Assembly (NCBI GenBank): GCA_002269645.1
Contig: NIVC01003430.1
Location: 1-64,000 of the forward strand
DNA: 64,000 nt
Direction of reading: 5' to 3'
DNA from: Macrostomum lignano
Taxonomy: Eukaryota
The notes beneath the pieces are model-generated. The model ran no database searches. It was not told the DNA's origin and was given only the letters and a program-made list of their open reading frames with translations. This document shows positions 14,339-63,676 of the stretch, in pieces (the first letter of the stretch is position 1; each line of letters starts with the position of its first letter). The position numbers and the translations under genes are program-made.

Positions 14339-16228
14339 GGCGAGGCATGCATTAATTTTATATTAATATTATATTTATAAGATTTTTAAGAAATAATTTC
14401 ATAATGGCACTCTACGAGTATAAATAAGAGAATCAGCTTAATATATCCATATACTAATGATAAAGCTTATTATATTTAGACAATGATTTTTTGTATTATT
14501 AAATCAAAGTTTTTCAGCTGGCTGCATATATAACGAAAATCTTTATAAATATGTATAAAGAAAAAAATTTCAGAAGTCATTTTTATATTAAACCTTTTTT
14601 AAGTTAAATTGCTATTTAACTTAATTATAATTATAAAAATCATAATTGTTTTTATTTATAATTATAAAAATCTATTACGGCAAGCTATTCATACTCAAAT
14701 AAACAATAAAAGAAGCTTTAAAAAGGGTATGAGTACTAAATAAAGAAATAATTTATTTATAAAATATAAAGTTATATTTTAAATTCTGTGGTCATTCATG
14801 GTGGCAGAAAAAAAGAGCTTTTAAAAAAATTTTTGAATTTAAGAAAGAAGAAAAAATATACCAGAAAATCAGAAACTAAGCTACTGTAGTTTTTTGAATT
14901 GGAGCTAAAAAATAAAGCGTAGAGATTCACTGATGAGTTATGACCTGCTAATGACCAATGCAGAACCTGTGATCAACAGTAAAGTTCACAAAGTTGAAAA
15001 AATTATAAAGGCAAATAATTGTGCAGCACTTGTAGCCAGCATGTTAAATACATACAAAACTGTCACACTCTAGCAATGCTGGTAAATGTAAATAGGTAAA
15101 TAGCAAATACGAGCATACATAAGTTACATCATAATGGCTATTAGTATATATTGAAAATTCAATATATGCGAATTACTGAGTGTGCATTATATAGAAGACC
15201 TAAAAATTGTTATGGCAAGCTATTCATACTCAAATAAACAATAACAAAAGCTTTAAAAAGGGTATGAAAAAGGGAATACTGCTAAACTATTTGCATCTAG
15301 ATGATGTGATGTTTGACCTTTGTATATTTTAGGATCCAAGAATACTTCACTCAAATTTTGAATACTAATTAAGGCAAGATTCATTCCAACACAAGAAAAG
15401 CATTCCAACACATTTATACTAAACAAGCCTGTCTATGATGGACAATGACGGTTATTATCAGTACTGCACAATATGTCCAGATCATAAATTATTCTTTGGA
15501 GAAATTGAAATCAAACCATTTGCTTGGGTAGCAACGGCGCAAATGTCGTTAAAAACGAAGACATTCGTATGTGCAATACACACTGGAAGTCCTGCAAAAA
15601 ACCCTTTCTCTTGATAAAGAAAAGAACCTTCTTTACTCTGGATAAAATCCTGATTTTTATGGCAGAAATCAGAGAAAACCTTGCTTTAATATACAGTTCT
15701 GCTCACTATACCCTGTATACTCAATGAGTTACGAGTACAATTGTTCTGCCGTTCTGCCGTATCTGCCGTTCCTACTCTGATGAGGTGGTCACAACTATGT
15801 TTCTAATTTCACAGCCAGAATTTAAAACAAAAAAATTGTGATTTTTCTAAATATACGAGTACGAGTATTTAGTAAATTAACTTACGTCAGCTAATTAACT
15901 CACGCCATAAAAGTTGGACTATTGCTCATACATAAATGCTTCCGAAATCCTATACCTACAATTTTAATCTGAAATTTCTACCTCGCAGGCGATCATCTTT
16001 GGTTTTAATATACGTCGCTTGGTCTACTTGCGCTACATGTACATGCAACTGTACGACATACTGTTTCCGACGTACAGTAATTTAATTAGCTCGTATCAAT
16101 ATATATAATGCATTATGTATAATGGCAATGCCCTCAATTTAAGCATTAGGAATGACGTGGTGGGCCATGCCTGCAATTTGAAGTACAGTATATCCGACGC
16201 AGTTCCATTTTCTAAATGTTTTAGTGTT

Positions 16229-16305
16229 AAATGTTTAAATGTTAAAATGTTAAATGTTAAATGTTAAATGTTAAATGTTAAATGTTAAATTTTAAATGTT
16301 AAATG
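16229..16305. repeat. (AAATGTT)n microsatellite
   Basis: About 10 copies. Confidence 0.92.
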
Positions 16306-16321
16306 TTTTTCTAAATGTTCT

Positions 16322-17074
16322 CCCCTGCATCCAGTAATGATAACGCACTATAGCTAGTCCACACATTCAGTGCAGTGGGGATTTTTCGAGTACAGCGCGT
16401 CATTCTACTTCATTTCTCTGTGCACGTAAGCCCCCGTTTAATCAGTGCAGCTGCCGCATACGCATAATGATAACCCCTGCATCCAGTAATGATAACGCAC
16501 TATAGCTAGTCCACACATTCAGTGCAGTGGAGATTTTTCGAGTGCAGCGCGTCATTCTACTTCATTTCTCTGTGCACGTAAGCCCCCGTTTAATCAGTGC
16601 AGCTGCCGCATACGCATAATGATAACCCCTGCATCCAGTAATGATAACGCACTATAGCTAGTCCACACATTCAGTGCAGTGGAGATTTTTCGAGTGCAGC
16701 GCGTCATTCTACTTCATTTCTCTGTGCACGTAAGCCCCCGTTTAATCAGTGCAGCTGCCGCATACGCATAATGATAACCCCTGCATCCAGTAATGATAAC
16801 GCACTATAGCTAGTCCACACATTCAGTGCAGTGGAGATTTTTCGAGTGCAGCGCGTCATTCTACTTCATTTCTCTGTGCACGTAAGCTCCCGTTTAATCA
16901 GTGCAGCTGCCGCATACGCATAATGATAACCCCTGCATCCAGTAATGATAACGCACTATAGCTAGTCCACACATTCAGTGCAGTGGAGATTTTTCGAGTG
17001 CAGCGCGTCATTCTACTTCATTTCTCTGTGCACGTAAGCCCCCGTTTAATCAGTGCAGCTGCCGCATACGCATA
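16322..17074. repeat. 152-bp tandem satellite, about 5 near-identical copies
   Basis: Units start at 16322, 16474, 16626, 16778, 16930. Confidence 0.97.
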
Positions 17075-19021
17075 ATAAATGAACTATGCAAGACTTAAAA
17101 TGATTTTTATAGACTCCCACAACAGTAGCGGACGAGCTCGTAAAGCCCCAAGCTATCCGGCTTCAAGTAGCTGATAGCAAATGCTACGCAATTTCATGCT
17201 TATTCACTTTTTTATGCTCAGTTATACAGCAGTTGCCTGATCTTCAGTTTTCCTCTGATAGTGTCAAATGTAATTGAAAAGAATGCGTGATATGGATCCG
17301 AGCTGCACACTTTTACACAAGGCGTAGAATCGCAGAAAATTCAATGGTAGATAGCAGTCCCTTCTGCTGGACAGCAACGGTTTCTGTACTTGATTTGGGA
17401 AGCAGGAAGGCAGAAAGAGCAACTATTCCTCTATTATCCCACTTAGGCTGAGTGAGATGCAGAGAAGGGAAATATCAATGATTCTACAACCATGCACTGC
17501 GTCATTTCTTTTAAAAATCCTGTTTCAGCAGTTCCTAAAACTCGCTGATAAAAATAATGCATGCATAGTTACTGATGATAGTTACTGCGCTGGAAACATC
17601 GAAGCTCTTGCACTCGACCATCAAGTGGCCAGTAAAGTAATCTTGGCCGAGTTCCAATTCAATTTGGTTTGAATTTCACGGTAGACTTGCAGCCGATAAA
17701 ACTCGTATTCTGTGCAAACTTTCATGATTCGAAGATCGGAAGATTCTACGCTTCGATAAAAAAGTTCGAATTAACTGACAAGTGTTCCGGGAACTTTGAC
17801 GGAAAACCAAGATGGCTGTTCCGGATGGATGGCGCGGTCTGCTGTCGGGTGTAGAGTTTATTTTTGCCGTGGGCAACCACCCTGTAAGGCGCTTTATTAA
17901 CTTGCATGTGCGTCATTACTGGCGGTTACTGATGAAGACTAAACGAAGCAGTCGCTTCCCAATGCTCAGCGGGGATGCCAGACAGTCACAGATGGCCAGT
18001 GGTGGCGCCGTGTCGCCCGGAACTCTAGCGGGTCATCCGTTTGTCAGCCAAATTGGTTGTGACTTCGGCTCTACAGTTGCACTGGGCGGCTTGTGTAAAC
18101 ATCTGTAATGCTGCATCGTGGATGAACCGGCGCGATGATCTTCAACCATCAAAGTCTTCAGAGCACGGCTCTGGCGATTGGCGGGACGAAGAAGCTGCTT
18201 TTTTCCTGGTCTGCCCCTTCGGATTTCATCCGTCTGTCTCCCACCGGGGCTGTCAAATGTCGGGTTCACTTTAAACCTGCAGCCGGAGGATCGGATGCGC
18301 CAGCTGCAGCTGAAGCACCGTGGTAAGGGGGCTCAGTGTGATCTGGGAGGTCTAGTAGCTCTTTGCCTTTCTTTCCCTTATCGAAATGGCCAAAAGCCAC
18401 GCACAGGAATTAAATGACCCCTTAAGAGATTTTTCTGGACAGCGCGGAACACTTCTCGCTCTGCGAGAGGGGAGTCTTCGAAAGAAATTTAGAAGTGGTT
18501 TGAGGTCAGAGTGGGGTCCGGAATTATCGAGCGGCTTAATCAAATCAGCGCATTGATCTCTTCTTCGCGCGCTCACCCCTAACGAAGGGCCTGGCAGCCA
18601 CTTGTCTGACGGTCTCGGCAGGCGGTAGGCAGAAATTCGAGCAGGCGCAGGCCAGAGGCTCGGTGGGGCGGCCACCTGCTGGCTGCTGTTTGCGGCAGGC
18701 CTTGGAGTTTTCGGGCTGGGCAAGTTTTCTGTGGAATCCGCCCAGCTGTACCCTCAAGGCCTCCGCTGCCAACATAATCTAAATCTAACGGCTGCCTGTG
18801 TGCAACTGCAGTGCGTTCGACCCGTTAACGTGTGATAATTAAACCCGATAATCAAACTTCGGTACGGAAATCGGCTGCCCTGATCTACCCTGCCGTTGGA
18901 CCCTCGCTGGCAGCCAGGAATAAGATATTAAGGACTCTGATGGCTTGGGAGCAGAACTGTAGAGACAATTTGTATCAAAAGTTTTTTGACAAATGCAAGT
19001 AAAGTGGATGCAGCGTTTCGA

Positions 19022-19352
19022 AGACAGCTGGGTCTAGTGGTCTGGCGTTCTGATGTGCCAGAGGCCCAGGCTCGATTCCAAATGCAGTCACATTAATTTG
19101 GGCTAGGTCTGTTCGCAAATTAACGGTCTTGAGGCCCAACCCCCCAGGCACAGTGAAGTGTACATGCATAACGATAAAAAAATAGGGCCACTGTACACTC
19201 CTGTGTGAGTGTGTACCTGCGCAAATGACTGCATACGTTTCCGTGCGCTTCTGTGCCTGTTTAGGGGAGTCGGTGAAATGGGCAGTAATGCGTCTCACCG
19301 GCTATGTGACAATGTCGCTTAAAGTGCGCCAGGGTGCAGACAGCCTTTAATA
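19022..19352 (+). mobile_element. Putative tRNA-derived SINE (family 2)
   Basis: A-box-like TCTAGTGGTCT and B-box-like GGCTCGATTCC. Head and tail (GTGACAATGTCGCTTAAAGTGCGCCAG) recur inverted at 24425-24540. Confidence 0.5.
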
Positions 19353-20579
19353 AGAAAAATTCGAAGACGGGTGGGGCCCCATCGAAGATGCTGCGCGTAG
19401 TGGGTCTCCCCGAACAGCAACTACGCAAACAAACTAATCGTGCATTGTCTGTAGCAGGCGCTGGGTGCAAATCGACGAGTGCGCCCGAGAACAGCTCAAG
19501 TACATCTAGTCGTGGATCAGCTGGGAATGACACGCTCGTTGCTAGCTGGGTGCCAAAACTGCTGACAGAAGTGCAGACGCAAGATGCGCACCTGTCGAGA
19601 AACTGTGGGCACCATCGGACACTTGGGATGCCACAATATTTGCCAGGCCTGGCTCCCAGAGATTACTGGCTGCTCTTAGGATAAGGGAACCACTGGTTGG
19701 GAAATTCTACCTCATCAAACTGCTGGTTTTGGGCCAAGCTGGTGACCGTCGCTCTCAGAATTCCTCGGGTTTTTTCGCTCGTAAGTCCATTTGCACTGAT
19801 TAAAAGCAATGCACTGTTGCACTAGAAATGTTTGTTCCCAGAGCCATCAAATGGGCTACCAAATCACACTACTGATGCATAAAGCGACGAGAAGTGATGT
19901 ACAAACGGCCTGATCAGGCAAAAATTGACCCTTATTTGATGGCGGCGTGAACCGGGCCTAACGCTCCCTGCTTGAAATCGGCCGTAACTACTTGAAAAAT
20001 AAAACGACTCTGCAGGCCAGAATGACAGTTTTTTTACTTTATACGAGTGTTTTAATGAAATCGTGACTCTGGAAGCCCCCCACATCCCTCATTATGCTCG
20101 TTAACTCTCAACCAAACACGCACCAAGAGAAGGGAAATGCCGCCCATGAGTAGTAAGTACAGTTGGCGAGGTTACACACAGCAGAGGGTTTGCAGACGTT
20201 CGAAAACCATCATGGGCCAATCCAAGGAATCCTTGAACTACGTATAGAACTGGATTCTAAATATAAGCATGGGGCCGCATGTGTAGACCGGATTGGAAGC
20301 TTGGACAAAGCGGTGTCATTGGCTCAGGGTGTGCACTTGGGTTAGGGCTGTGCGCATGCTATAAATGCTACCAGAGGAAGCCGCACTGATAATGCTGGCA
20401 GACTTATGTAACTTAAAGGCTAATTATTTAGGATATAGAAATCTGCCCTCCGGCCTTCCTACTTATTTTGAACTGACCCAGTTGTTCAGTCCAGTCGCAA
20501 ATTTGATTCGACAGCCACCGGGAATTCGAACTAGCCAAGCAAAGTTCAAACAAGACGACAGTCACTTGTTTGCCCAAGA

Positions 20580-23072
20580 ATGCAGCCAATCCCTCTGTTA
20601 CTTGGCACCCTGGTTACAGTTGCATTCGCTAGCAGTGACTGGAACTCAAATTTCGACGAGAGACTTGTAACGCACGCAAGAAACGACGCCGGTTACGCTC
20701 AGCAGCCCGACGATGTGACGGTGCTGGTGCCACGACCCGGAGCTGGACGGTTCGTTGGATTCCTTACCGGAGTGTCGCAATTTCTGAACGAAATGACGGG
20801 TGACCCGGCCAAGAATGTTTCCGCATTCCTGGGCATCCCGTACGCTGCCAAGCCAACAGGCAAGCTGCGCTTTCGTCTGCCACGGCCGGCCTACTTGGAC
20901 TCCCGAGGACGCTGGTTAGCACGTCGCTATGGCAACGCGTGCCTACAGGGCTCCTATCGCTTTCGCATGGAGGCGCTCAACCTCTCCTTGGACCAGTTCT
21001 CGGAAGATTGCCTGTACCTAAATTTGTTTGTACCTGAAAACGCAAGCGAAGCATCGCAGGCGAAACTACATGTACCTGTGCTACTGAATATCCACGGCGG
21101 AACTCTTCTCGTTGGTGGACCTCACGGCTACCCAGGCCAAGTGCTGGCCTCCAAGGGAATCGTCATGGCAACGCTCTCCTACCGGTTGAATATATTTGGT
21201 TTGATTTCGACTGGGACCTACTCAGCGCCTGGCAACCTCGCTCTGTGGGACCAGCGTGCGGCTCTCATGTGGATTCGCGATAACGTTGAGTTCTTCGGTG
21301 GCGATCCAGGCCGCGTGACCCTGAGCGGGGAGAGCGCCGGCGGCTCGTCAGTCGGACTTCACATTGTGTCCAACGGTCGATTTCTGAACGGCGGCCGACC
21401 GCTGTTTCACCAGGCGGTGCTCATGAGCGGTGCCGACATCGCTAATTGGGCCGTGTCGAGACCTGTCATCGGTGACCATGAGGGCTCCATCGATTATATT
21501 GCTGGCTTTGTCGGCTGTTCCAGGTCTTCATTAGCCGCCACAATGAGCTGCCTTGCCAGCGTATCCGCCTACGAGATTGACAAATGGAGCTTAAAGCGCC
21601 GGGAGGATACCACTGAGCCTGAATGGCTCTGGGCTCCTGTAGTCGACGGTGTCCTCATCGGTGATATTCCGCTGGTGCTGCGAAAGAATGGCGATTTCAT
21701 GAAACTGCCCATCATGGGAGGCTGTACCAGAGATGACACTGTGAGAAGCGACCTTATAGAGGAGGAAAGCGTTCGAAGCATCCTCTTTGACGAACTCACG
21801 AAAAGGGGCACTAAAATGGTGAGACATTGGTTCCCTAGCTGATATTGGGTTCAGTACCAGCAGCTTTCCACTAGCTGACAGGCCGGTAACCTCCGGCCCG
21901 CTGGCCACATGCTGACCACAAAGCCTCTCTACCCGGCCCTCGGGTCCTTTGAAAATTCACAAAAGCATCCGGCCCGCTCCATGTTTGTCTCTCTTCTCAA
22001 CTCCCTTCTCTCTCTAATCCCCTCTCTCCTCTCTCTCATTTCCTCTTCTCTCTTTTCTCTAATCTCCTTTTCTTCTCTCCTCTCTCATCTCCTCCTTTTC
22101 TCTTCTCTTCTCTCCTATCCTCTCCCTTCTCTCCTCTACCTCTCTCCATTCCTCTCTCATTTCCTCTCTCCCCTTCTCTCTCTTCTCTCCTTTCCCCCTT
22201 CGACTCCATCTCTCCTCCCGTCTCCTCTTTTCTCCTTTATTCCTCGCCTCCCTTCTCCTATCTCTCTTCCCTCTCATTTCTCCCCTCCTCTGGCCCGCAG
22301 TCATGAGCTGGGTTCTCTATCTGGGCTTTGAGGTAAAAAAGTTTGCCGACCTCTGCACAAGCAGAAATTTGACGTCCCGCAGATTCCCGGCATAGAGGCC
22401 ATAGTTGAAGAAGCCATCAAGGTTTACCTGCAAGGCAAGCGAAGCGCCAGCAGCCGGGCAGAGATGGTCCAGCTGATGAAGAATGTGACGCGGGACTACG
22501 AAATGATCCAGCCGGTGTACCAGGCGCTGCGTTTCCACGCCAATCGGCAAGACTCTCGACAGCCCGTCTTCCTGTACGAATTCGGGTACGAAAAGCGGTT
22601 TCAGTGGCCGCCTGAAGTCAGGCACGGCGACGACTTGGACTACATTTTAGGAGTGCCGTTTGTCTCGTCCGACTGGTGGCAGCGCATCAGCGGCGAGGCG
22701 GATCTCGACAAATTCAATAAGTTCAACACGACCGAGCAGCGGCGCCTGAGCGACTTCATGACGACGCTGTGGACAAACTTTGTGAAATTCGGCAACCCGA
22801 CGCCAACGCCGGTGCGTGGCTTCAAGTGGGATCGCTTGACGCCCCGCAGCAACTCGGAATCGCCCGTCCCTTGCGCCATGCTCAACTTGCCAGAGCTCAC
22901 CAGCGTAACACCTGACTACAAGCGCAAGGAGATGCAGCTGTGGAAGAGGTTCTATGACCTTGAGCTGCAGTACGTGCTTCAGCTGAGCAGTGGAGAGTCG
23001 TCGGGCGCTACTTCCGCTGTCCTGCTGGCGATTGGGTCTGCAGCTGCCCTGCTGGCCAGACTGCTTGCCTGA
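20580..23072 (+). CDS. Secreted type-B carboxylesterase (cholinesterase/neuroligin fold), probably GPI-anchored, ~642 aa
   Basis: Signal peptide MQPIPLLLGTLVTVAFA, SEDCLYLN, HGG oxyanion motif, GESAGG nucleophile, GCTRDD, HGDDLDYILG, hydrophobic C-terminal tail. Simplest intact model: exons 20580-21818 and 22383-23072 (phase 0). Alternative acceptors at 22300 and 22364. Confidence 0.85.
21985..22290. repeat. Pyrimidine (CT)-rich low-complexity tract in the carboxylesterase intron
   Basis: About 300 bp almost entirely C/T. Confidence 0.9.
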
Positions 23073-23917
23073 GACAGCCGGCCAGAGGTCAGGCGAGCTG
23101 CACTGCAACTTCAATTGCGCAAAAGTTTCTATAGAAATGTTCAGTTCTGTGCATATCTGTGCTGCTCTGGTGCCTTGCACAATTATGATACTTCCTAGCG
23201 CAAATTTAGCGGCTTTTTCAATTTTTTATAGAAAATTATCCACCAAAAGGCTTAACAACCAAACAGAAAACAGACTGAAACAGTTGCTCGTTGCAGCAGC
23301 ACCGCGCCTGTCGGAACGGTTCAAGTGCATCGAAATGCAGCATTGCGGTTCGACTCTGTGCCTTATTCTGTCAATGGGAAAATTTCAATGCTGACGACGT
23401 GAAACTTGAGCCCCAAACTGGCTGTGCAATATGCCATCCAAGAATAAAATCGGGGGTAATAAATATTGGGATTTAAAAAAACGCATAAAAAAATTATCCC
23501 ACTGAGAAACAATAAAATCCAACCAGGTCGAACCCACGCAGGTATACATCAAACACGGAGTTCTATAAATGCAGGATCTAGGTCGTGTATCAAACTTTGG
23601 CGAACCGCAAGCTGTAGTTATGCGATCGTAAAACGACCCCCCGCACGCAAGCGGAAATATTGAAGAAGACTTATCTTGATTTGCAACTGGATCTGGTCAA
23701 GAAACTGAGTTAAAACTATTTCTTCCAGCACCATCTGGGGCAAAAATGAATGCTCCCAGCAAAACTCAACCAGGCTCGAATTGGGTCTAAGCGTCAAGTA
23801 ATCAACACACGCTCCACACGCTACACACGATATCCGTGGGGAAGCAGCGCCAACCAGACCTCCACTGTCCCATAGAGCACAGAATAGCTAGAGAGCTGGC
23901 TAGTTTGCGAGACTACA

Positions 23918-23992
23918 ATCATGGGAGGCTGTACCAGAGATGACACTGTGAGAAGCGACTTTATAGAGGAGGAAAGCGTTCGAAGCATCCTC
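23918..23992 (+). repeat. 75-bp direct copy of carboxylesterase coding sequence 21711-21785
   Basis: 74 of 75 identical (GACCTT vs GACTTT). Confidence 0.93.
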
Positions 23993-24424
23993 GCGGCAGT
24001 CTCAGACGATTGCAACAGATAGCCAGGTGTCAGTGCTGGCAACACGGATGGTCAGGTGTTAGTGCTGACGTCAGGATATAGCCAGACAGGTGCTGTAGTA
24101 ACACTAGCTGCGTCCTGCCGAACTCGTTCGTTTTTCCGTACTTGGAAATAAACAACAGACAGCAAACTTCGCAGCACAGGCGGATCAACGCGATTCACTG
24201 GCAGCAGGCTGGACTTCCTGAACATCTCGACTGCAAAAGGTTCAAAGCAGAAAACCTGATGGCACAGTCTCATCAGGAGATCTAGCGACACTTGCAGCAA
24301 TTGCGACTCGGTTCCGCCCCGAGCTCATGCTTTGGTACCCTGAGGCAGCATTTGAAAAGCAGGTGCAGCAGTGGGTGCTTGGTCAGGTCGGGTGTTCTCA
24401 CAAGATCTAAATCTGACATTTTAG

Positions 24425-24540
24425 ATTAAAGGCAGGGGCTGTGTGCAAACTACTGGCGCACTTAAAGTGACAATTGTCACACCCCAAAATGACTGCATTT
24501 CGCCGCTTGCACATCAGAGCGTCGCACTAGACCACTAGGC
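24425..24540 (-). mobile_element. Internally deleted copy of SINE family 2
   Basis: Reverse complement aligns by eye to the head (19033-19100) and tail (19305-19352) of the 19022 element. Confidence 0.45.
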
Positions 24541-25613: not shown

Positions 25614-25873
25614 GGGCCTTTTCATATTGCTTGCTCTGTTTCCAGAACCAGAACCAATTTGTAAAGTATAACTTTTTGTCTCTATAACTAGAGGGAGATA
25701 CGTGCTATAAAGTTTTTATTATTGAATGACAATCGCCAAGAAGAAAGTGAAAAATCGTGCAAAGTGAGGCTGTTAAGGCAGTCAAATATTAACAGAGTTT
25801 AATAGTTATACTGCTGTTTTTCTTGGAATTCCGAACCGATTCTGGTTCTGGAATTGGTAATATGAAAAGACCC
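25614..25873 (+). mobile_element. MITE copy 1 (260 bp, TIRs, 3-bp TSD ATT)
   Basis: Ends GGGCCTTTTCATATT ... AATATGAAAAGACCC, flanked by ATT on both sides; inverted homolog at 63677-63945. Confidence 0.8.
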
Positions 25874-26829: not shown

Positions 26830-26840
26830 CTACCCCCCTC
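26830..26840 (-). promoter_or_regulatory. Polypurine tract (GAGGGGGGTAG)
   Basis: Abuts the 3' LTR on the minus strand. Confidence 0.85.
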
Positions 26841-32733: not shown

Positions 32734-32784
32734 GATGATCGATGACAGGTGCAACCTTCGGTCTTTTATGCTATGAAGAAATTC

Positions 32785-35776: not shown

Positions 35777-35829
35777 CTTACAAGGTAAATCTAGTCATAT
35801 TCATAATATAGACATCCAGGACACTTCTT

Positions 35830-47152: not shown

Positions 47153-47193
47153 ATCTGAACCGATGGCCCTAGCACGCACACGCAATGGGGGCG

Positions 47194-51562: not shown

Positions 51563-54500
51563 ATGGGAAAGCCTGTGAGTTTTTATTTGGATTGAAAATT
51601 TTGTTTCATCAAATAAGCTATTTTTGAATAGGTTTGTTTATTACAAGCGTATAAACTTTTGAAATTGTCTTCAACCATGTACAGATCAATGTCAAAGTCA
51701 CTACTATGGATGCTGAGTTGGAGTTCTCCATTCAGTCCAATACTTCTGGCAAGCAGTTGTTTGATCAGGTAAGCCGGCTTCAGTATAAACAGTTTAACAG
51801 TCAGTTGTGGGAAAAACTTTGCACTGTGTTCAAATGAAAAGTTCTGTCAACATCCAGACCAAAATTTAGAATAAATGTGCATCTGTGCTCAACCCAGGTC
51901 GTGAAGACCATCGGCCTCAGAGAGATCTGGTACTTCGGCCTGAGGTACATCGACTCCAAAGGCTTTCCCACCTGGCTGAAACTCAACAAGAAGGTCATGC
52001 AGCAGGACCTGCCCAAGGAGGCTCAGATGGTGTTCGAGTTTCGCGTCAAGTTTTATCCAGAGGACGCCTGCGAAGAACTGATCCAGGATGTCACCCAGCG
52101 CATGTTCTATCTGCAGGTCAAGGAGGCCATCCTTAATGGCGACGTCTTCTGTCCGCCTGAGACTGCCGTGCTGCTCGCCAGCACGGCCTGCCAGGTAAGT
52201 CTGGGGTAACTTGGAGTAGAGTAGTTACATCTGGGGTAGAGTGGGGGCCATCTTGGAGTAGGAGTAAAGTGGGGGCCATCTTGAAGTAGAGTGGGGGCAT
52301 CTTGGATTAGAGTGGGGGTTATCTTGGAGTAGAGTGGGTACATCTTGGAGTAGAGTGGGTACATCTTGGAGTAGAGTGGGTACATCTTGGAGTAGAGTGG
52401 GTACATCTTGGAGTAGAGTGGGTACATCTTGGAGTAGAGTGGGTACATCTTGGAGTAGAGTGGGTACATCTTGGAGTAGAGTGGGTACATCTTGGAGTAG
52501 AGTGGGTACATCTTGGAGTAGAGTGGGTACATCTTGGAGTAGAGTGGGTACATCTTGGAGTATAGTGGGTGCCATCCTGTAGTAAAGTAGGGGCCATCTT
52601 GGAGTAAAGTAGGGGCCATCTTGGAGTAAAGTTGGGGCCATCTTGGAGTAAAGTAGGGGCCATCTTGGAGTAGAGTAGGGGCCATCTTGTAGTAAAGTAG
52701 GGGCCATCTTGTAGTAAAGTAGGGGCCATCTTGGAGTAAAGTAGGGGCCATCTTGGAGTAGAGTGGGTGCATGCAGGTTCCCACTAAAAATAGGCGGTCT
52801 TCTCAACCCCGGCCTGCTGCAGGTGAAGTTCGGAGACTACAATCCCGAGGTGCACACGGCCGGCTTCCTCAGCCGGGAGAAGACCTTCCCCATTCCCGTG
52901 CACGTGCTGGAGAAGCACAGCCTGACCAAGGGCGACTGGGAGGAGAAGATCGTGAACTGGTACAAGGAGATGCGCGGCCGCATGAAGGAGGACGCCATGC
53001 TGGAGTACCTGAAGGTGGCGCAGGACCTGGAGATGTACGGCGTGAACTACTTTGAGATCAAGAACAAGAAGGGCACCGACCTGTTCCTTGGCGTCGACGC
53101 TCTCGGGCTGAACATCTACGCCAAGGACGACAAGCTGACGCCCAAGATTGGCTTCCCCTGGTCGGAGATCCGCAACATCTCCTTCAACGACAAGAAGTTC
53201 GTCATCAAGCCCAACGACCGGAGAGCGCCGGTAAGTTGCAATGGCAAAGTAGCTAAGAGTTTGAGACAGGTGGGGTAGCTGAGGAGTTGGTAGTTAGGGA
53301 TGGGGTAGCTGAGGAGTTGGTAGTTAGGGATGGGGTAGCTGAGGAGTTGGTAGTTAGGGATGGGGTAGCTGAGGAGTTGGTAGTTAGGGATGGGGTAGCT
53401 GAGGAGTTGGTAGTTAGGGATGGGGTAGCTGAGGAGTTGGTAGTTAGGGATGGGGTAGCTGAGGAGTTGGTATTGGCAGGTAGAGGTGAGTTTGCTGAGG
53501 AGTTGGTAGTTAGGGATGGGTTAGCTGAGGAGTTGGTAGTTAGGGATGGGGTAGCTGAGGAGTTGGTATTGGCAGGTAGAGGTGAGTTTGCTGAGGAGTT
53601 GGTAGGTAGAGGTAGCTAATGAACCAAAGTCAATGACTCGAACCCCCCCCCCCGCCGCCAGGACTTTGTGTTCTTCGCATCCCGCCTGCGCATCAATAAG
53701 CGCATCCTGGCGCTGTGCATGGGCAACCACGAGCTGTACATGCGCCGGCGGAAGCCCGACACCATCGAGGTGCAGCAGATGAAAGCCCAAGCCAAGGAGG
53801 ACCGGGCCAACAAGCAGTTTGAAAAGTGAGCACTGGAAATGATTAACCAAAATGACATTTTCCATGCAGCGCAGATATGCTGTGCAGGTTGCGAGCCCCA
53901 GAGCGGCAATAAAAGGCGATATGAGAGCGCGGCTGTGATAGCAACGCCCCTCTGTACTCCCCTCTGTCTCTCCTCATTCCTGACCTGGTGGGCGGTTAAG
54001 CAGTTGACGCACGCCAGGCGGGCCTCTTGTCTCGCCCAGTCAGTCAGTCAGGTCTGCCGTGACTTTTCACCTTTTTATTGCTTGCGCCCCACTGCTTTTT
54101 GGCCCGGCTTCGTTTCGTAGAATTTTTTTCTGCGTTTTTTCTTCTTTTCTTTCTGCTTTCCTTCTTAATTTCTGCCTTCTCTTGCCCGGGCCTCGCCCTG
54201 GCAGGAGTTTGTCTCGCTTATCTGCCCCCCCCCCTGCTCGGCGCTGGGGCTTGCTGCGCACGGGCGCAGAGCTTTGATCGCCCGCCTGGGTTAGGCCTGC
54301 TGGCCTCAGTACCTCTGCTTTCCCTGCTGCTACTGGCAATCTGCTCTCTCTGAATGAGCCGGCCCACCAGCACTGCCGGCCCGCATTTCGGACGTTTGCA
54401 AATTCATAATGATTTCTCTCTGCCTTATTGTGCACCTGGCTCAGGTCCGTTAGTTCGGTCACAGGCGGCAGATACGGGACTCGGAGTGCAGGCTGGGGCC

Positions 54501-57500
54501 AAAAAGTTGATAGGCAGGTTCGGCTGGGCTCAGATAAGCCGGCAGCTGCTCAACACGCCCCTCCACCCAGCGCAGATTCTGTTCGCCATTTTTTGCCAAT
54601 CGCTGTTTCCATGGCAACTAACTAAGGCGTTGCTCCTGCGCCGGCTGGCGGCGGCCTCGCAGGCGGCTGCGTGCCAATTGTACAAGCCAAGCCAGTAAAG
54701 TCGAACATTTTACAGCGTGCTGTTTTTACAGTTTCTGTGCTGTTTTTTACAGCCGGGCAACTGCGCAGTTCCGCAGCCACCGCCCCACATCTTATTTGTT
54801 TAGTCACAGAGGCTTTCTAGCCACTTTTTTTGCCCAATTTTCTCGAGTTTTTGGAGGGTCAGGCCGCTAATTAAACATTTAAACAATCAAAGGCTATTGG
54901 AATTTGTGCAGGCTTTCTATTTTCAAGGCTAAAACTGCAAAAGCGATTCTCTTATTGTCTTGTTAGTCTTGAAGTGTGCCGACTCAAAGCCACCTGCAAA
55001 ACTTGTTTTTTCAGCGTGGAAGTTTTGGAAAGTTTTCAGCATACAATGGCTTGCTTTTTCAACAATTCAACTAATTTTCGATATTAATATTCTCGATCGC
55101 CTACTGATATCGTGCAAGCAGTAGTGCAGTTTGGATTTGATAACTATTGATTTTTGCGCGTATTTAAATTAATTAAATAAGGGTCCGTCTCGAACGCGAG
55201 CGGGCGGCCCGCGAGGAGGCGGAAAGCCGTCGGCACGAGCTGGAGGACCGGCTGCGCGAGCTGGAGAAGGAGCAGGAGAGCTACGCCAGGGAGAGGGACG
55301 AGCAGACCCGCCGGCTGGCCGAGATGTCCCGCCAGATGGAGGAGATTCAGCGCCAACGCGACGAGATCGAGGCGGCCAGGGAGCGCGCGGAGGAGATCCG
55401 GCAGCAGCTGGAGTCGCAGGTGCAGATGAGCGCGGAGGAGCGCGCCCGGCTAGTAGAGGAGAACGAGAAGGTCCAGGCCATGGTGGCAGCCAAGGAGGAG
55501 GAGGCCCAGCAGGCCACAGAGGAGCTGACCACCATGCGCTCGGAGCTGGAGACGGTGCGCAAGGACCTTGAGGACACCACGGGCCGCATGCAGGAGCTGT
55601 CCACCCAGGCCGCCGCCGCCAACTCTGCCGCCGCTGCCGCCGCTTCAGCCGCCTCTGCCAGCGCCTCGGCACCTGCCGCCTCCGCCAGCGCCGTCCACGC
55701 GGCCCACCTGGACGAGATCGACGACGATGTGGCCGGTGAGCTGCTGGGCTGCTGATTAATGCTTTTGCATTGGCTTCAGCTACTCAGGTTCTTAATAGGC
55801 ATTTTCTTCTATTGTACTACTGTTAGTAGCTAATATGAAAATATGTTTGCTTTACTAAATTTATTTTTATAGCCAAGTCTATTCCGGTTGTTGCTAAGCT
55901 GCTGGCCGATCGCTGCTCAGCCTGATGCGCATTTTTATGGTATTCGTTGCCGAGCTGTCGGCTGCCCATCATAATTTGCTTTTTTGCTTCTTCTTAGCTG
56001 CTGGAGCGGAGGCTGGAATCCGGTTTCCTGACTATCTATCCAGACAGTTTGAACCACACCCTGTGCACAGGGAACCCAAATGCACCCGAATTCCCTGTGC
56101 TACTCATAGTAGTTTCTCAAGCCAATATGTTACAATCCTGTTGCTTGCGCTATGCGTCATGATGGACCCACGGTGCACATGAACTCTTGCTGTCTGCAGG
56201 CTCTCGTTCCAGGCTGTCTTCTGCTGCTGCTGCTCGGGTTGGCGTGTCCAGGCTCAGTAACTTTTGCATTGCTGCATACCTTGCTCACTCCGCAGCTCAC
56301 CTGTGTCCTTTGTGTCAGCTTGACTCACCTCACCTGTGTCCTTTGTGTCAGCTTGACTCACCTGTGTCAGTGTGTCAGCTGTGCCACTTGCCTCACCTGT
56401 GTCAGTGTGTCAGCTGTGCCACTTGCCTCACCTGTGTCAGTGTGTCAGCTGTGCCACTTGCCTCACCTGTGTCAGTGTGTCAGCTGTGCCACTTGCCTCA
56501 CCTGTGTCAGTGTGTCAGCTCCTTCATTGGTGCAGTAGTGTCTTTTTTTTCAACTTAGGCAATTATCTAAAAAAACATTTACCGCAATTTTTGCAATTAT
56601 TGTCTTTTTGGGTTTTTAGTTTCAAACTTTTTCCTTTCAAGCTTCACACCATACCTGATGAGACTGTTTGCTGCACTTGGTGCTTCTGTTCTGTTTGTTC
56701 ACCAATGCTTTTAAGTTTAGTCCTCTTGCACTTTACAGAACTGCCATCCTGGCCGTGCTGCCATCCCGCTGAGATGCCACCCCCTCCCTGCCATCCCGCT
56801 GAGATGCCACCCCGCTGAGATGCCACCGCCTCCTTACCATCCCGCTGAGATGCCACCCCCTCCCTGCCACCCCGCTGAGATGCCACCCCCTCCCTGCCAT
56901 TCCGCTGAGATGCCACCCCCTCCCAGCCATCCCGCTGAGATGCCACCCCCTCCCTGCCACCCCGCTGAGATGCCACCCCCTCCCTGCCACCCCGCTGAGA
57001 TGCCACCGCCTCCTTACCATCCCGCTGAGATGCCACCCCCTCCCTGCCACCCCGCTGAGATGCCACCCCCTCCCTGCCACCCCGCTGAGATGCCACCGCC
57101 TCCTTACCATCCCGCTGAGATGCCACCCCCTCCCTGCCACCCCGCTGAGATGCCACCCCCTCCCTGCCACCCCGCTGAGATGCCACCCCTCCCTGCCATC
57201 CCGCTGAGATGCCACCCCCTCCCTGCCATCCAGCTGAGATGCCACCCCCTTCCTGCCACTCCGCTGAGATGCCACCCCCTCCCTGCCATTCCGCTGAGAT
57301 GCCACCCCCTCCCTGCCATCCCGCTGAGATGCCACCCCTCCCTGCCACCCCGCTGAGATGCCACCCCCTCCCTGCCACCCCGCTGAGATGCCACCGCCTC
57401 CTTACCATCCCGCTGAGATGCCACCGCCTCCTTACCATCCCGCTGAGATGCCACCCCCTCCTTACCATCCCGCTGAGATGCCACCCCCTCCCTGCCGCGA

Positions 57501-57978
57501 GCTTTCCCAGCCCACTGTTTGCCACCCCCTCCCTGCCGCGAGCTTTCCCAGCCCACTGTTTGCCACCCCTTGTACTCGTGAGAATCAAAGCTTCCGAAAC
57601 CCGCCCGCCGCCCCGCCTCAGACGAGAAGAATTACAGCTTCGACAGTCTCCGCAATGGCGAGCCGACGGTGGACCGGGAGGACATCCGCGGCGAGTACAC
57701 CCAGGAGCAGAGCGTCAAGGCCAAGCTGGAAGAGATGCGCGATGAGCTGAACAACGCCAGGTAGGCTGTGGGGATTTGCAGTAGTGAGGAGGGTCCTGAG
57801 CATTCCTGACTTTCTCTTGCCCCTGTCTGCCGCTATTTGCAGGCGCGAGGAGAAAGTGCAGCCAATCGACAAGCTGCACGAGACCAACGTGCGCGAGGGC
57901 CGGTCCAAGTTCAAGACGCTGCAGAAAATCCGACTAGGCAACACGAAGAAGCGCATTGACGAGTTCGAGTCCATGTGA
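51563..57978 (+). CDS. Ezrin/radixin/moesin (ERM) family protein, 8 exons, 597 aa
   Basis: Exons 51563-51574, 51685-51768, 51898-52194, 52823-53230, 53662-53825, 55182-55735, 57622-57760, 57843-57978 (1794 nt, all in phase). FERM domain, coiled coil, and C-terminal [23 protein letters not shown] with the regulatory Thr. Confidence 0.96.
52205..52770. repeat. 20/21-bp minisatellite in ERM intron 3
   Basis: AGTGGGTACATCTTGGAGTAG core flanked by AGTAGGGGCCATCTTGGAGTA variants. Confidence 0.95.
53268..53610. repeat. 30-bp G-rich minisatellite in ERM intron 4
   Basis: GAGGAGTTGGTAGTTAGGGATGGGGTAGCT, about 11 copies. Confidence 0.95.
54605..54618. promoter_or_regulatory. RFX X-box in ERM intron 5
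   Basis: GTTTCCATGGCAAC, one base from the classic GTTGCCATGGCAAC palindrome, in a non-repetitive CpG-retaining intron. Confidence 0.55.
56290..56520. repeat. 35-bp minisatellite in ERM intron 6
   Basis: CACCTGTGTCAGTGTGTCAGCTGTGCCACTTGCCT and variants. Confidence 0.9.
56757..57500. repeat. 30/29-bp C-rich minisatellite in ERM intron 6
   Basis: GCCACCCCCTCCCTGCCACCCCGCTGAGAT, about 25 copies. Confidence 0.95.
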
Positions 57979-60056: not shown

Positions 60057-60067
60057 CGAGTATTATA

Positions 60068-60372: not shown

Positions 60373-60909
60373 ATTTCGACTATTAAAATATTAAAAGCAG
60401 CTCTTCCGGACAGCACGTATTGATAATTTGCACTGAGCTCAGGTCTAGTAATTTGCCTGTTTATTATCGCCTGATTTCGCATTGGATAAAATAGAAAACG
60501 GCTGATTAATTATCTACTGTAATACGAGCTGAGTGCTGTGAAGCAGAGCATGCAGTTTATTAACTCGAGAATCGTACTCAATACACACACGGTACAAACC
60601 AGGTGTGCAGGGAGCAAAAAGGCAGTTAAGCCAATGTACATACACTTGCTGCGGCCTGCACTTGTCTAAGTGAAACTGATTGCTATTAAACATGATTTTT
60701 GAAGGCCGGTTAATATTACTTGAAAGGGACTTTTGAGCGGAATAATTTTCTACCAGCAACTCATTATTTAACTTTTACAATTTTCATAAACCGGCCTTCT
60801 AAACTTTTATTAGCTACTGGTTTCTGTGCGTCCGATTTCAAAATTCTCGCTGCAGGCCAATTAAAAAGCGTTAGGCAGCAAGTCGGAGGGTAACTAGAAC
60901 TCAATGGGG

Positions 60910-62451
60910 TCACTTGGCCCTCGGTACGGCGACCTTCTTTGTCTCCTGCACCTGCGGCTGCCCAGTAGGTCGCAGCTCCTCTAGGCGGCTCTGCAAATCG
61001 TCTATGCGAACATCCTTGAGGTGCAGCAGGTGCTCCAGGCGCCGGATCTTGGCCTGCAGGATCTCAACGGTCTCATCCTTGGCGAGGCACTCCTGCACCT
61101 TCTCCTCGTAGGCGAGTCTGGTGACGTAGTCGGACTGGCCGATGTTCTGCAGGCTCTCCGACTTGCGCGGCGGCGGCTGCTGCGTTGGCCGGCCATAGCC
61201 GGCGGCTTTCGGCGATCGGCTGGGCGACATCTTGCTGACGCCGGCGCCGCCGTGCCGCAGGCTGGCCTGATCCGCCTCCGGTGCGTCTGAAGCGTGGGCC
61301 GCCTGCCGTAGTGAATGTGATTTTGTTTGCTTCCGTGGAGAAACTGCTCAGGGTTTGAGACTGCTCAGGGTTTGAGACTGCTCAGGGTTAGAGACTGCTC
61401 AGAGTTTGAGACTGCATGCTTAGGGTTTGAGAATACTCAGGGTTTGAGACTGCTCAGGGTTTGAGACTGCTCAGGGTTAGAGACTGCTCAGAGTTTGAGA
61501 CTGCATCCTTAGGGTTTGAGAATACTCAGGGTTTGAGACTGCTCAGGGTTTGAGACTGCTCAGGGTTTGAGACTGCATAGGGCTTGAGACTGCTCAGGGT
61601 TTGAGACTGCTCAGGGTTTGAGACTGCTCAGGGTTTGAGACTGCATAGGGCTTGAGACTGCTCAGGGTTTGAGACTGCTCAGGGTTTGAGACTGCTCAGG
61701 GTTTGAGACTGCTCAGGGTTTGAGACTGCTCAGGGTTTGAGACTGCTCAGGGTTTGAGACTGCTCAGGGTTAGAGACTGCTCAGAGTTTGAGACTGCATC
61801 CTTAGGGTTTGAGAATACTCAGGGTTTGAGACTGCTCAGGGTTTGAGACTGCATAGGGCTTGAGACTGCTCAGGGTTTGAGACTGCTCAGGGTTTGAGAC
61901 TGCTCAGGGTTTGAGACTGCTCAGGGTTTGAGACTGCTCAGGGTTTGAGACTGCTCAGAGTTTGAGACTGCATCCTTAGGGTTTGAGAATACTCAGGGTT
62001 TGAGACTGCTCAGGGTTTCAAACTGCTCAGGGTTTGAGACTGCTCAGGGTCGAGTCTTAGATGTCGCTACAAACTCTGACAAGCTCAGCCGACTCACTTT
62101 CTCTTCATAAAGTGACCGGTCCATCTTGGTCCGCAGCAGCAGCAGAACCCGCTCGATGGTGCCCGCTTTCGCGTTGATGATGGAGTCGATCACATCGTTT
62201 GAAAGCTCGAAGTTGAGCTTCTTGAATGTCTTCCAATTAAGAAGCATCCAGTTCTTCTTCTTCTGCTCGGTGTTGTTGCACGGGTTGAAGTTGTGCAGGT
62301 CCACCAGCCGGGGGAAATAGTGCTTCACCACCTCTGCCATCAGAACGCCGTCGCTGAAGTCGCGGGCGATGTTCTTCTTGGGCCGGGACAGCGGGATCTG
62401 GTCGATCCAGGCGTACAGGTCCTGCAGGACCTCGTCGTCAATCTCCGCCAT
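60910..62451 (-). CDS. SPEF1: Sperm flagellar protein 1 (CLAMP), 2 exons, 248 aa
   Basis: Exons 62451-62098 and 61302-60910 (phase 0). CH-like WIDQIPLSRPKKNIARDFSDG; C-terminal coiled coil KDETVEILQAKIRRLEHLLHLKDVRI. Confidence 0.93.
61345..62048. repeat. 17-bp minisatellite (GAGACTGCTCAGGGTTT) in the SPEF1 intron
   Basis: About 40 copies with occasional CTTAGGGTTT variants. Confidence 0.96.
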
Positions 62452-63676
62452 GCCGGAGCTGTCGGCTGCGGGACGGCAGAAAAATTTCGTCATTTTTTGG
62501 GAAACTCATTTTTCTAGGAATTTAATTCTCTAAAGTGCATTAAGCTCTTAATCGAATCGAATGTTCACAATTAAACCCAAGCGTTAGGCTAAAAAATCAA
62601 AGCATTAACTAGAAAGTCCGGAATGCAGTTCCATTCACTCACATTCATTATGTAGCTGCCTATTGCTTGGCTATGCAGGAGCTATATTTCGCACATTGAG
62701 GCCAAAAAAATTATTACCCCTGGACCGAGCAGGACACGTGAACTATTTATTTCCTATTGAAATCCTATATAATTATTACAGTTTTACAGGCTTTGAAAAT
62801 AATATAATTTTTTATATAAAAATACAACTCAGATCGCACTGTCCCAGTCTGCTGGTCTATAGGATTCAAATACGGCGGGAAACATATGTTGTGTAGACAT
62901 TTTTTGTGAAATGGCCTAGAAGCGAATCAATATTGGTATAGGCAGAGACAAATATAAAAAGTCTTTTAATTCACTGTTTCGAGAATAGTTTTAGACTTCA
63001 GTGAGCGTGCATACATGAAAAAACATGACAAATATTTGCCTAAAAATCTACCATATTAAAATAAGTTACTGTACTAAAGAAAGAGACAGTCATCAATTTT
63101 TATTTTTTAAAATGCAAACAAGCAATACGTTTTACTTGCATCAAATCATTCCATTTGAGTCCATTGCACTTTAATTTTGCAGTTACTAGAACACATTCAA
63201 TTATGATAAGAAGTTTTAAGTTTTAGGTTTTAGGCACAAAAACAACATCAGACATAGACTTATGAGCATAAAAAGTAAAAGAATCAATGACAAAGAAATA
63301 TTTCTAGAAAAATGGATCACGGTGACAGAGTTACCGAGACCAATTCCATATAGTAGCAGCAGTATTAACTAAAATTTCTCTCGGCCAGTAACAAAATTAA
63401 TTTCAAGCATGTAACTCAAGCAGTGACTATAGACACAATAAGGTTACAATAGGAAATGGTTAATTTGTATAAAAACCTATGAAAAGCAAATAAATATATA
63501 TAAGTTACCATAGTGAGCTCTAAAATATGCTAAAATGCGTCTTTAAAAGTTACTATTTTGTTTTTCTAAGTACACATATCTAAAATGGCGAAAATTTAGT
63601 TTGTGACTTTTAAGGAAATAAGTTCACAGACGACGCAGAACTTGCGAATTTATAAACCACGGTCCACGACGTCATG

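Follow-up and report, generated by a model that had tools for sequence, protein, structure and literature searches.

Sharply bounded CpG-depleted blocks in the Macrostomum lignano genome and their possible origin in local germline DNA methylation

Genes and repeats at the locus

We analysed 64,000 nucleotides of M. lignano DNA (Mlig_3_7 contig NIVC01003430.1:1-64000; hereafter, the window) and considered six gene starts within it. The first coding exon of a WD-repeat gene, an ORF with a GC3 of 0.87, lies at 13865–14338 on the minus strand; this gene was called WDR97 in a first-pass annotation, and its identity is given by WD40 similarity only, with the matches falling further 3′ in the gene. 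It is followed by a carboxylesterase gene (20580–23072, plus strand; Pfam COesterase, 7e-82). The intergenic DNA between this gene and FIP1 is interrupted by a young LTR retrotransposon of the Ty3/gypsy type (26515–33119, minus strand), which is normal in CpG content, has RT, RNaseH and integrase domains, LTRs of 316 nt with 2 mismatches and the TSD CACC, and which is missing from a diverged homeolog of the locus on an independently assembled contig (Mlig_3_7 NIVC01000004.1; hereafter, L001).

FIP1 (37737–39470, plus strand) is intronless, consisting of a single 577-aa ORF of 70% GC with a Pfam Fip1 motif (2.7e-20), and its homeolog is annotated as a single-exon gene of 573 aa. Immediately 5′ of the ATG, at 37721–37734 on the plus strand and present in L001 too, stands TCAATTTATCGCAT, which of all sequence in the window best matches the 3′ half of the spliced leader of M. 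lignano (SL; sequence from PMC8629364) and which suggests that FIP1 may be an SL-bearing retrogene. No canonical [T/C]TNCAG acceptor was found close to this ATG. Further downstream are a calmodulin-like gene of two exons (47341–49074, plus strand; EF-hand matches and splice sites), an ezrin/radixin/moesin (ERM) gene with 74% identity to radixins over the FERM domain (51563–57978, plus strand) and the first coding exon of a SPEF1-like gene (62047–62493, minus strand; Pfam CH_2 'CH-like domain in sperm protein', 4.7e-35). By tblastn, the ERM gene was mapped from its ATG at 51563 through exon 2 (~51679–51771) and exon 3 (from ~51907) to its C-terminus at 57975.

CpG-depleted blocks and composition controls

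Expected CpG counts were taken from local base composition, with GpC serving as an internal control. The window holds two robust CpG-depleted domains that are not tandem repeats. The larger, 4.25 kb of non-coding DNA at 33451–37700, ends ~35 nt before the FIP1 ATG and contains 24 CpG against 140.9 expected (o/e 0.17; Poisson 4.5e-34), with 210 GpC. The first-pass annotation had described about two CpG in 33480–35280 and a boundary at the ATG; our counts agree on both points, with 2 CpG against 38.4 expected and a CpG-free gap (37288–37731) giving way to ~10 CpG per 100 bp from the ATG (37737). No ORF longer than 81 aa occurs in this domain, a 41-bp unit present twice is its sole tandem repeat, and its GC-richer DNA at 35.4–36.3 kb (GC 0.45–0.59) still has an o/e of 0.2–0.3. 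A hairpin-like inverted repeat with 90-nt arms (33376–33465/33972–34061) is also present, its arms differing by 12 transitions and 2 transversions.

The second domain (50401–51900) extends from −1.16 kb to +0.34 kb relative to the ERM ATG, reaching the intron 2/exon 3 junction and enclosing exons 1 and 2. It is free of tandem repeats and contains 4 CpG against 33.5 expected (o/e 0.12; 1.7e-10), with 47 GpC and a CpG-free gap at 50553–51432; the stretch 50640–51420, noted earlier as almost lacking CpG, has 0 against 9.2 expected. ERM exon 2 likewise has zero CpG, as had been claimed, but its codons are not mostly A/T-ending (GC3 0.57, vs 0.81 in exon 3 and 0.95 in exon 4, which carry 15 and 30 CpG, respectively). 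A third block, upstream of the WD-repeat gene (14400–15500; 7 CpG vs 20.4 expected, P=6e-4), has a significant deficit but is only moderately depleted, weaker than first stated, and was not called by a 2-state HMM.

Across these three blocks, CpG rho* was 0.19, compared with 0.90 for an AT-rich, non-repeat control totalling 9 kb, while GpC rho* was 1.59 vs 1.47 and the remaining dinucleotides were alike. Enrichment of CA/TG was slight (rho* 1.17 in blocks and 1.13 in the control, with ~1.30 expected), and TpA stood at 0.91 vs 0.82; the lost CpG is fully accounted for only when TpA is taken as the product of a second step. Non-tandem 300-bp windows below 42% GC were bimodal—19 had an o/e below 0.4, 33 had an o/e of at least 0.5, and 0 fell in between. 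Given the normal GpC content and the bimodal CpG o/e of AT-rich non-repeat DNA, with expectations set locally, base composition does not account for the deficit. An earlier proposed control, the AT-rich DNA at 26.1–27.6 kb that keeps its CpGs, is weaker than stated, consisting mostly of the LTR and 3′ part of the young gypsy element.

CpG content was normal in exonic windows (FIP1, ERM from exon 3, the WD-repeat gene and SPEF1; o/e ~0.9–1.1), including the FIP1 coding sequence (~1.05). The majority of the other CpG-free stretches are minisatellites; in the interval that the first-pass annotation covered, minisatellites with a CpG-free unit account for nine other CpG-poor segments. A small depleted patch away from gene starts lies between the carboxylesterase gene and FIP1 (25371–26099; CpG-free gaps 25371–25701 and 25837–26099, low-o/e windows at 25501 and 25801), and L001 is low at 15251–15500 too.

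Substitution spectrum between two copies of the locus

M. lignano is a hidden polyploid (PMC10468722, PMC8629364). We compared the FIP1 block with its counterpart in L001; the ERM and WD-repeat blocks were judged by composition alone. The same block occurs in L001 at 16001–19340, in the same position and ending at the L001 FIP1 ATG, with 18 CpG against 100.3 expected. It has been retained in both copies despite several kb-scale indels between them, comprising window-only segments at 33369–34178, 34790–35996 and 36884–37568 and L001-only segments at 16272–17366 and 18285–18619.

Transitions reached 6.5% in the block (1551 aligned bp) vs 2.2% and 2.1% in two controls (Fisher 1e-11), whereas transversions matched those of neighbouring DNA (2.5% vs 2.8%, P=0.69). 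Just 1 of 13 CpGs in the block was common to both copies, compared with 85 of 103 in the CpG-normal non-coding control at 23100–26100 (P=1.4e-7), where CpG o/e is 0.82, ts/tv is 0.80 and divergence is 5.0%. The 12 private CpGs of the block faced TG or CA in nine cases, and TG<->CA double differences, the trace left where each copy independently lost an ancestral CpG on the opposite strand, numbered 8 in the block and 0 in 5883 bp of control (P=3.5e-6). At CpG in the block, 9 differences were counted vs 2 conserved C; transitions at CpA were raised ~5x (P=8e-8) and those at CpC and CpT ~2x, beyond what plain CpG methylation predicts. The GC-richer core (35996–36884) has 76 transitions and 17 transversions relative to L001, with many TG<->CA double differences, and CpG decay there appears to be still in progress.

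This hypermutability is local, since CpG in the neighbouring controls is kept to the same degree as other dinucleotides (0.83–0.88); similarly, 152 of 173 CpGs in the DNA upstream of the carboxylesterase gene are common to both copies. In line with the deamination first proposed, the excess of substitutions is domain-limited, transition-only and CpG-centred; its direction, with two sequences compared, is unpolarised. The FIP1 block appears to be undergoing C-to-T decay that is centred on CpG and, more weakly, affects CpA. A further depleted block in L001 (1251–2500) adjoins a mariner element and is not at a known gene start.

Depleted blocks and gene starts

The first-pass annotation had proposed that methylation or deamination is targeted to 5′ or outron regions. 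The mutational half of this proposal is supported, by composition and by the L001 spectrum, but the targeting is not established. A block was found at three of the six gene starts (FIP1, ERM and the WD-repeat gene), with its 3′ edge coinciding with the ATG in FIP1 and with the exon 3 acceptor in ERM. The others are without a significant block: the carboxylesterase gene, with an upstream CpG o/e of 0.7–1.0 (17.1–20.5 kb); the calmodulin-like gene, whose upstream DNA is a 46-bp satellite and which lacks a non-repeat depleted block; and SPEF1, where the reported upstream depletion proved not to be significant (62900–63600; 9 CpG vs 14.7 expected, P=0.08). Two depleted blocks lie away from known gene starts (25.4–26.1 kb and L001 1251–2500), and the probability that the 5′ side was taken by chance is ~0.25, given two informative tandem-oriented cases. 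The tie of blocks to gene starts, based on three cases only, is therefore unproven.

Possible origins of the blocks

Transition-type CpG loss confined to sharply bounded kilobase blocks fits the footprint expected from local germline DNA methylation. We favour, at a probability of roughly 0.6, the reading that each depleted block is an island densely methylated in the germline (5mC, mainly at CpG), whereas the rest of the genome behaves as unmethylated; 5mC as the cause, its action in the germline and a recruiter are what we infer. Methylated cytosine would become thymine by deamination, turning island CpG into TpG/CpA and then partly into TpA, while CpGs would be retained in exons, young transposons and other non-coding DNA. 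Such islands would be positionally stable, the two edges of the FIP1 island having been kept since the copies diverged by ~5%. In the window they would be intergenic, abutting the 5′ ends of FIP1, ERM and the WD-repeat gene, with the ERM island spanning exons 1–2; why they sit beside gene 5′ ends is left outside the proposed mechanism.

As in the mosaic methylation of invertebrates such as Ciona, honeybee, oyster and annelids, a mostly unmethylated-looking genome is combined with a few sharply bounded CpG-depleted, presumably germline-methylated domains in a species reported to keep DNMT1 and DNMT3. Passages in PMC11292947 and PMC9246332, citing Wasik 2015, report that M. lignano retains both enzymes, and passages in these papers and in PMC10658182, again citing Wasik 2015, that its global 5mC is low. 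In the canonical mosaic pattern (PMC11292947), depletion falls on the bodies, and above all the exons, of genes with constitutive expression; here, by contrast, the exons listed above as CpG-normal keep their CpGs and it is AT-rich non-coding sequence before genes that is depleted, so that canonical gene-body methylation does not describe the locus. Methylation directly upstream of genes would recall the promoter methylation of vertebrates, centipede, mealybug and sponge (Table 1 of PMC9246332). Those genomes, however, are heavily or broadly methylated, with unmethylated CpG islands as the exception, whereas here the background is CpG-normal and the (presumably methylated) upstream block is exceptional; because broad expression is expected of both FIP1 and ERM, a silencing role is also unlikely. 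Footprints of the kind seen in the M. lignano blocks are known, but their placement here is unusual.

A tentative alternative is that old mobile elements left the islands behind as methylated relics, or that the islands are small patches of heterochromatin. Their position at gene starts would then be incidental, for example through insertions piling up in upstream DNA. Transposon methylation elsewhere likewise affects kilobase, non-coding, indel-rich blocks, and indels between the two copies cluster in the FIP1 block, which contains the hairpin-like element and has a GC-richer core that resembles a formerly CpG-rich insert now decaying; the depleted L001 block, moreover, adjoins the mariner. 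On the other hand, the blocks have no transposon protein domain or long ORF, show no self-similarity within the 64 kb to indicate a transposon-derived or multi-copy nature, and resemble neither each other nor any other sequence in the 86 kb compared; the indel edges yielded neither terminal inverted repeats nor target duplications, and the ERM block includes conserved coding exons. The recognisable transposons nearby (gypsy, the L001 mariner and a 258-bp repeat) are CpG-normal, so if transposons are targeted, the young gypsy and the mariner have escaped or are too recent.

We consider it rather unlikely that methylation is instead directed specifically to the transcribed 5′ portion of genes, comprising the outron, any introns of the 5′ UTR and the first exons, making the islands a 5′-restricted gene-body methylation that seems to lie upstream because trans-splicing discards the outron. 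Holometabolous insects and Daphnia have 5′-biased intragenic methylation in the first 1–2 kb of the transcription unit, a pattern that would match the ERM block (exons 1–2 and introns 1–2) and also the FIP1 block, if the latter is read as an outron. In insects this methylation is mostly exonic and begins downstream of the TSS, unlike the FIP1 block, which is 4.25 kb long and ends at the start of a coding exon. All three non-repeat blocks of at least 1 kb do adjoin a gene 5′ end, and the ERM block stops at the exon 3 acceptor, taking in the CpG-free exon 2 with its reduced GC3. Trans-splicing also speaks for this reading: it affects ~30–39% of genes in M. lignano (PMC8629364, PMC5730564), and GTGCAG, 6 nt upstream of the ERM ATG, is a plausible trans-splice acceptor (motif from PMC8629364). 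Against it stand the gene starts without a significant block, the depleted patches elsewhere, the ~0.25 chance of a 5′ position and the missing canonical acceptor near the FIP1 ATG.

Deamination or hypermutation independent of 5mC, whether on ssDNA at R-loops or promoters, by a cytidine deaminase, or by a RIP-like process acting on duplicated DNA, appears improbable. It would accommodate the C/T differences raised in all block contexts, but the effect is by far strongest at CpG, GpC is untouched, and strand skews across the three blocks are inconsistent with transcription direction. The locus is duplicated and, as in the RIP of ascomycete fungi, the blocks are sharply bounded and AT-rich, with a transition-only excess and more CpA<->TpA differences; to our knowledge, RIP is not known in animals. 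RIP-mutated DNA in Neurospora has a (CpA+TpG)/(ApC+GpT) index below ~1.03; in the blocks the depletion is CpG-specific and the index is high, at 1.46, and the duplicated FIP1 and COesterase coding regions are spared, differing by 1.6–4% (96–98% identical) with normal spectra and no hypermutation. RIP does not fit these features.

An origin without any special process, through base composition, selective loss of CpG, tandem repeats or misassembly, holds for the minisatellite segments and for 62900–63600, but is very improbable and largely refuted for 33451–37700 and 50401–51900, which are non-repeat, are deficient against local expectation with GpC as the internal control and, for the former, recur on an independently assembled contig, with transitions and TG/CA partners that point to mutational bias rather than selective removal.

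CpG-depleted blocks outside tandem repeats

We mapped CpG using sliding windows, a CpG-free gap map, and a two-state HMM, with expected counts computed from 100-bp local composition. CpG-poor segments are numerous in the window, and the majority are minisatellites with a CpG-free unit (12.05–12.7, 13.2–13.65, 43.75–47.15, 47.65–48.2, 52.2–52.8, 53.25–53.65, 56.25–57.35, 59.1–60.05, and 61.35–62.05 kb). A single phenomenon behind every CpG-free stretch is excluded, since nine HMM-depleted segments are arrays whose unit lacks CpG. The first-pass annotation had described depleted domains upstream of four genes, and its spot counts were reproduced exactly (2 CpGs in 33480–35280, none in 50640–51420). 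Two of these non-repeat domains are unambiguous—the block upstream of FIP1 (33451–37700; 24 CpGs versus 140.9 expected, P = 4.5e-34; 210 GpCs) and that at ERM (50401–51900; 4 versus 33.5, P = 1.7e-10; 47 GpCs). Depletion upstream of the WD-repeat gene (14400–15500) is moderate (7 versus 20.4, P = 6e-4), and that near the SPEF1-like gene (62900–63600) does not reach significance (9 versus 14.7, P = 0.08).

Base composition as the sole cause of the deficit is excluded by the local expectation, by the GpC control, and by the behavior of AT-rich DNA: among non-tandem 300-bp windows below 42% GC, CpG observed/expected (o/e) is bimodal, with 19 windows below 0.4, 33 at or above 0.5, and none in between. 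GC-richer windows with o/e below 0.4 occur only within the FIP1 block. Likewise, the strand-symmetrised dinucleotide signature of the blocks differs from that of control DNA essentially at CpG alone (0.19 versus 0.90), so the deficit, which persists against local expectation, is not explained by base composition. TpG/CpA is only slightly enriched in the blocks, and TpA is raised.

Block edges are abrupt. On the right of the FIP1 block, a single CpG in 37288–37731 gives way, at the ATG, to ~10 in every 100 bp, which bears out the boundary originally proposed there. The right edge of the ERM block is the acceptor of exon 3 (from ~51907), placing exon 2 (~51679–51771) inside it; this exon was correctly described as free of CpG, but its codons are not mostly A/T-ending (GC3 0.57, below the 0.81 of exon 3 and 0.95 of exon 4). 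The insertion site of a Ty3/gypsy element does not form the sharp left edge of the FIP1 block: the element stops at 33119, ~330 bp of CpG-normal DNA follow, and an element-free homeolog has the identical edge. Self-BLAST found no similarity among the blocks, giving no support for one repeat family, and ORFs in the FIP1 block are at most 81 aa. At its left edge, in a segment without an aligned counterpart in the homeolog, lies an inverted repeat (33376–33465/33972–34061; 90-nt arms, 84% complementary, 506 nt apart) that may be a hairpin-forming element.

A separate pattern was seen in two minisatellites of the WD-repeat gene, 13259–13612 and 5053–6427, in which the unit's CpG position varies among CG, TG, and CA (TG 10/CG 5 and CG 33/CA 29/TG 10, respectively). 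In arrays 40241–41068, 48247–48689, and 56805–57496, CG is kept in all matched units, with one AG variant in the last. The variation in the WD-repeat gene may reflect gene-body CpG decay or merely amplified variant units.

Comparison with a homeologous copy

Macrostomum lignano is a trans-splicing flatworm and hidden polyploid (PMC8629364, PMC10468722), and a second copy of the locus, L001 (contig NIVC01000004.1), carries the species' carboxylesterase homolog and is collinear with the window over 6481–22577 (window 17125–40944), at 94–96% identity in genes and 80–92% in non-coding DNA. L001 is also depleted upstream of FIP1 (16001–19340; 18 CpGs versus 100.3 expected, P = 5.5e-24), with o/e jumping back to 1.06 at the ATG of a single-exon FIP1; 3′ of the esterase its CpG is normal (120 versus 155 expected). 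Both edges of the FIP1 block are kept in the two copies despite five kb-scale indels inside, which makes it an old, stable feature and not an accident of one sequence. Synteny ends left of L001 6481; positions 1–6480 of that contig contain a mariner/Mos1-type transposase (167–1228), a gypsy fragment (~4000–5400), and, beside the mariner element, a 1.25-kb AT-rich depleted block (1251–2500; 4 CpGs versus 23.7 expected).

We then compared differences between the copies in 1551 aligned bp of the FIP1 block with those in two controls, 23.1–26.1 kb (2534 bp) and 17.1–20.5 kb (3349 bp). Transversions amount to 2.5% in the block and to 2.8% and 1.6% in the respective controls, the first two not differing significantly (P = 0.69), while transitions reach 6.5% in the block against 2.2% (P = 1e-11) and 2.1%. 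Only 1 of 13 CpGs in the block is common to both copies, compared with 85 of 103 and 152 of 173 in the controls, where CpG is conserved equally to other dinucleotides; of the 12 block CpGs present in a single copy, 9 stand opposite TG or CA in the other. The block also contains eight TG↔CA double differences and the controls none (P = 3.5e-6)—the mark of CpGs that each lineage lost on its own, one on either strand.

The transition excess is concentrated in a GC-richer core (35996–36884; 76 transitions, 17 transversions), which evidently retained many CpGs at the time of the copy split; in the AT-rich part at 34.2–34.8 kb, already CpG-free, the transition/transversion ratio is now ordinary. The arms of the inverted repeat differ from each other by 12 transitions and 2 transversions. 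The excess extends to other contexts: C/T differences are raised at CpA (41/404 versus 13/602 in control, P = 8e-8) and roughly twofold at CpC and CpT. CpA↔TpA differences were ~5 times as frequent in 33451–37700 as in control, with transversions equal. A C/T-type excess, as the first-pass annotation had predicted, is therefore present, local, and CpG-centred, its direction unpolarised because two sequences only are compared. Methylation outside CpG, at CpA, could underlie the CpA component, as could a second process of deamination.

Candidate sources of the depletion

From these sequence comparisons, the best-supported reading is that local, dense germline 5mC within an otherwise unmethylated genome would have caused CpG to decay in the blocks; a CpA deamination component would explain the slight TpG/CpA enrichment alongside raised TpA. 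Of the three outcomes named at the outset as counting against methylation or deamination, two, a purely compositional deficit and a missing C-to-T excess, were contradicted, and L001 adds direct comparative support. Three reports describe M. lignano as retaining DNMT1 and DNMT3 and having low global 5mC (PMC11292947, PMC9246332, PMC10658182). In the literature searched, we found no M. lignano methylome paper later than the original bisulfite study.

Alternatively, the blocks might be methylated relics of old insertions, a reading encouraged by the density of indels between the two copies of the FIP1 block, but they carry no recognisable transposon feature, and recognisable transposons nearby are CpG-normal. 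Transcription-linked single-strand deamination is at odds with an effect specific to CpG, and strand skews do not follow transcription direction consistently across the three blocks. RIP-like mutation is unlikely, given a (CpA+TpG)/(ApC+GpT) of 1.46 and the sparing of duplicated coding regions.

Under the germline 5mC reading, the footprint itself is of a known kind, mosaic methylation read from CpG decay. The setting is unusual: the depleted sequences are AT-rich 5′ flanks, not exons. To our knowledge, methylation patterns are essentially undescribed for the flatworm phylum. If the blocks are methylated, sequence alone predicts where the low-level 5mC of M. lignano lies, namely not in gene bodies, as in most invertebrates, but in discrete non-coding islands that are stable in evolution, several of which directly precede genes. 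M. lignano is a flatworm amenable to transgenesis. Because its transgenes take 1–2.5 kb upstream regions as promoter fragments (PMC5730564), block location matters for the choice of fragment. More generally, hidden polyploidy supplies an internal mutation-spectrum comparator for every locus, making homeolog comparison a general method.

Position relative to gene starts

Three non-repeat blocks of at least ~1 kb adjoin the 5′ ends of FIP1 (37737–39470, plus strand), ERM (ATG 51563, end 57975, plus), and the WD-repeat gene (ATG 14338, minus; identified by WD40 similarity only, “WDR97” being the first-pass label). The starts of the carboxylesterase (20580–23072, plus) and calmodulin-like gene (47341–49074, plus) have no comparable block, and the SPEF1-like gene (start ~62493, minus) has only the non-significant one. 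A small conserved depleted patch at 25.4–26.1 kb is distant from any gene start, and in the two intergenic regions with tandem-oriented genes, blocks would both fall 5′ by chance with a probability of ~0.25. Given these blockless starts, off-start depleted blocks, and chance level, we put 5′/outron targeting forward as a hypothesis that a single window merely suggests. A more specific model—sparse 5mC in kb-scale “methylation islands” on the outron/5′ flank of a gene subset, with exons and young transposons unmethylated and appreciable deamination of CpA as well as CpG—we regard as unlikely. If true, it would tie island placement to spliced-leader trans-splicing; we know of no animal in which such an inverted CpG-island architecture has been described.

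The FIP1 start

FIP1, one 577-aa ORF, has no intron in either copy. Immediately before its ATG stand 14 nt, TCAATTTATCGCAT (37721–37734; L001 19364–19377), that match the 3′ half of the spliced leader of M. lignano, CGGTCTCTTACTGCGAAGACTCAATTTATTGCATG (PMC8629364), better than any other stretch of the window does, with a marginal score of 23 against a background of 21. As a lead, FIP1 may be a retro-copied trans-spliced mRNA inserted in a pre-existing depleted block, an origin that may account for the sharpness of the edge; downstream of the gene, we saw no remnant of a poly(A) tail. A search for FIP1 homologs did not find close relatives, its output being dominated by low-complexity words, and one for ERM found no close ortholog.

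Other features of the locus

More than half of the M. lignano genome is repeats, with LTR elements at 21% and simple/tandem repeats at 15% (PMC5730564). Rfam and tRNA scans across the window gave zero matches. The carboxylesterase ORF (20580–21839) shares 96% identity with M. lignano protein BOX15_Mlig025662g2. Searching for exact copies of the gypsy pol ORF led to positions 18316–40136 of contig NIVC01003430.1 (GCA_002269645.1), a sequence identical at every base, in reverse complement, to window 18316–40136; the window thus corresponds to 1–64000 of this Mlig_3_7 contig. No non-coding stretch is better conserved between the homeologs than the 3.4 kb upstream of the carboxylesterase (17125–20580; L001 6481–10000), with 3.6% divergence, GC ~0.5, and no annotated gene in either copy; this stretch may represent regulatory DNA or a transcript missing from the annotation.

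The Ty3/gypsy element (26515–33119, minus strand) is intact-looking and very young, with gag, protease, RT, RNaseH, and integrase ORFs, a CACC target duplication, and CpG o/e of ~1.0–1.4, and is missing from L001; its 316-nt LTRs differ by two mismatches, which are uninformative. A 258-bp dispersed repeat, SINE- or MITE-like, occurs at 25613–25869 and, inverted, at 63681–63946 (90% identity); L001 lacks it, and the former copy is an insertion relative to that locus, so the element was mobile after the homeolog split.

Twenty-odd minisatellite arrays occupy many introns and spacers. Immediately upstream of the calmodulin-like gene, 73 copies of a 46-bp satellite (96% matches) take up 3.4 kb (43766–47156), and about twenty others lie in introns of the WD-repeat, calmodulin-like, ERM, and SPEF1 genes. 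Finally, a 70-codon ORF on the plus strand (39939–40151; ANQEKKSAPERL...), with a hydrophobic stretch and no ATG of its own, starts directly after an ATTGCAG acceptor-like site, ~170 nt beyond the FIP1 AATAAA, and may be an operon partner taking its start codon from the terminal AUG of the spliced leader.
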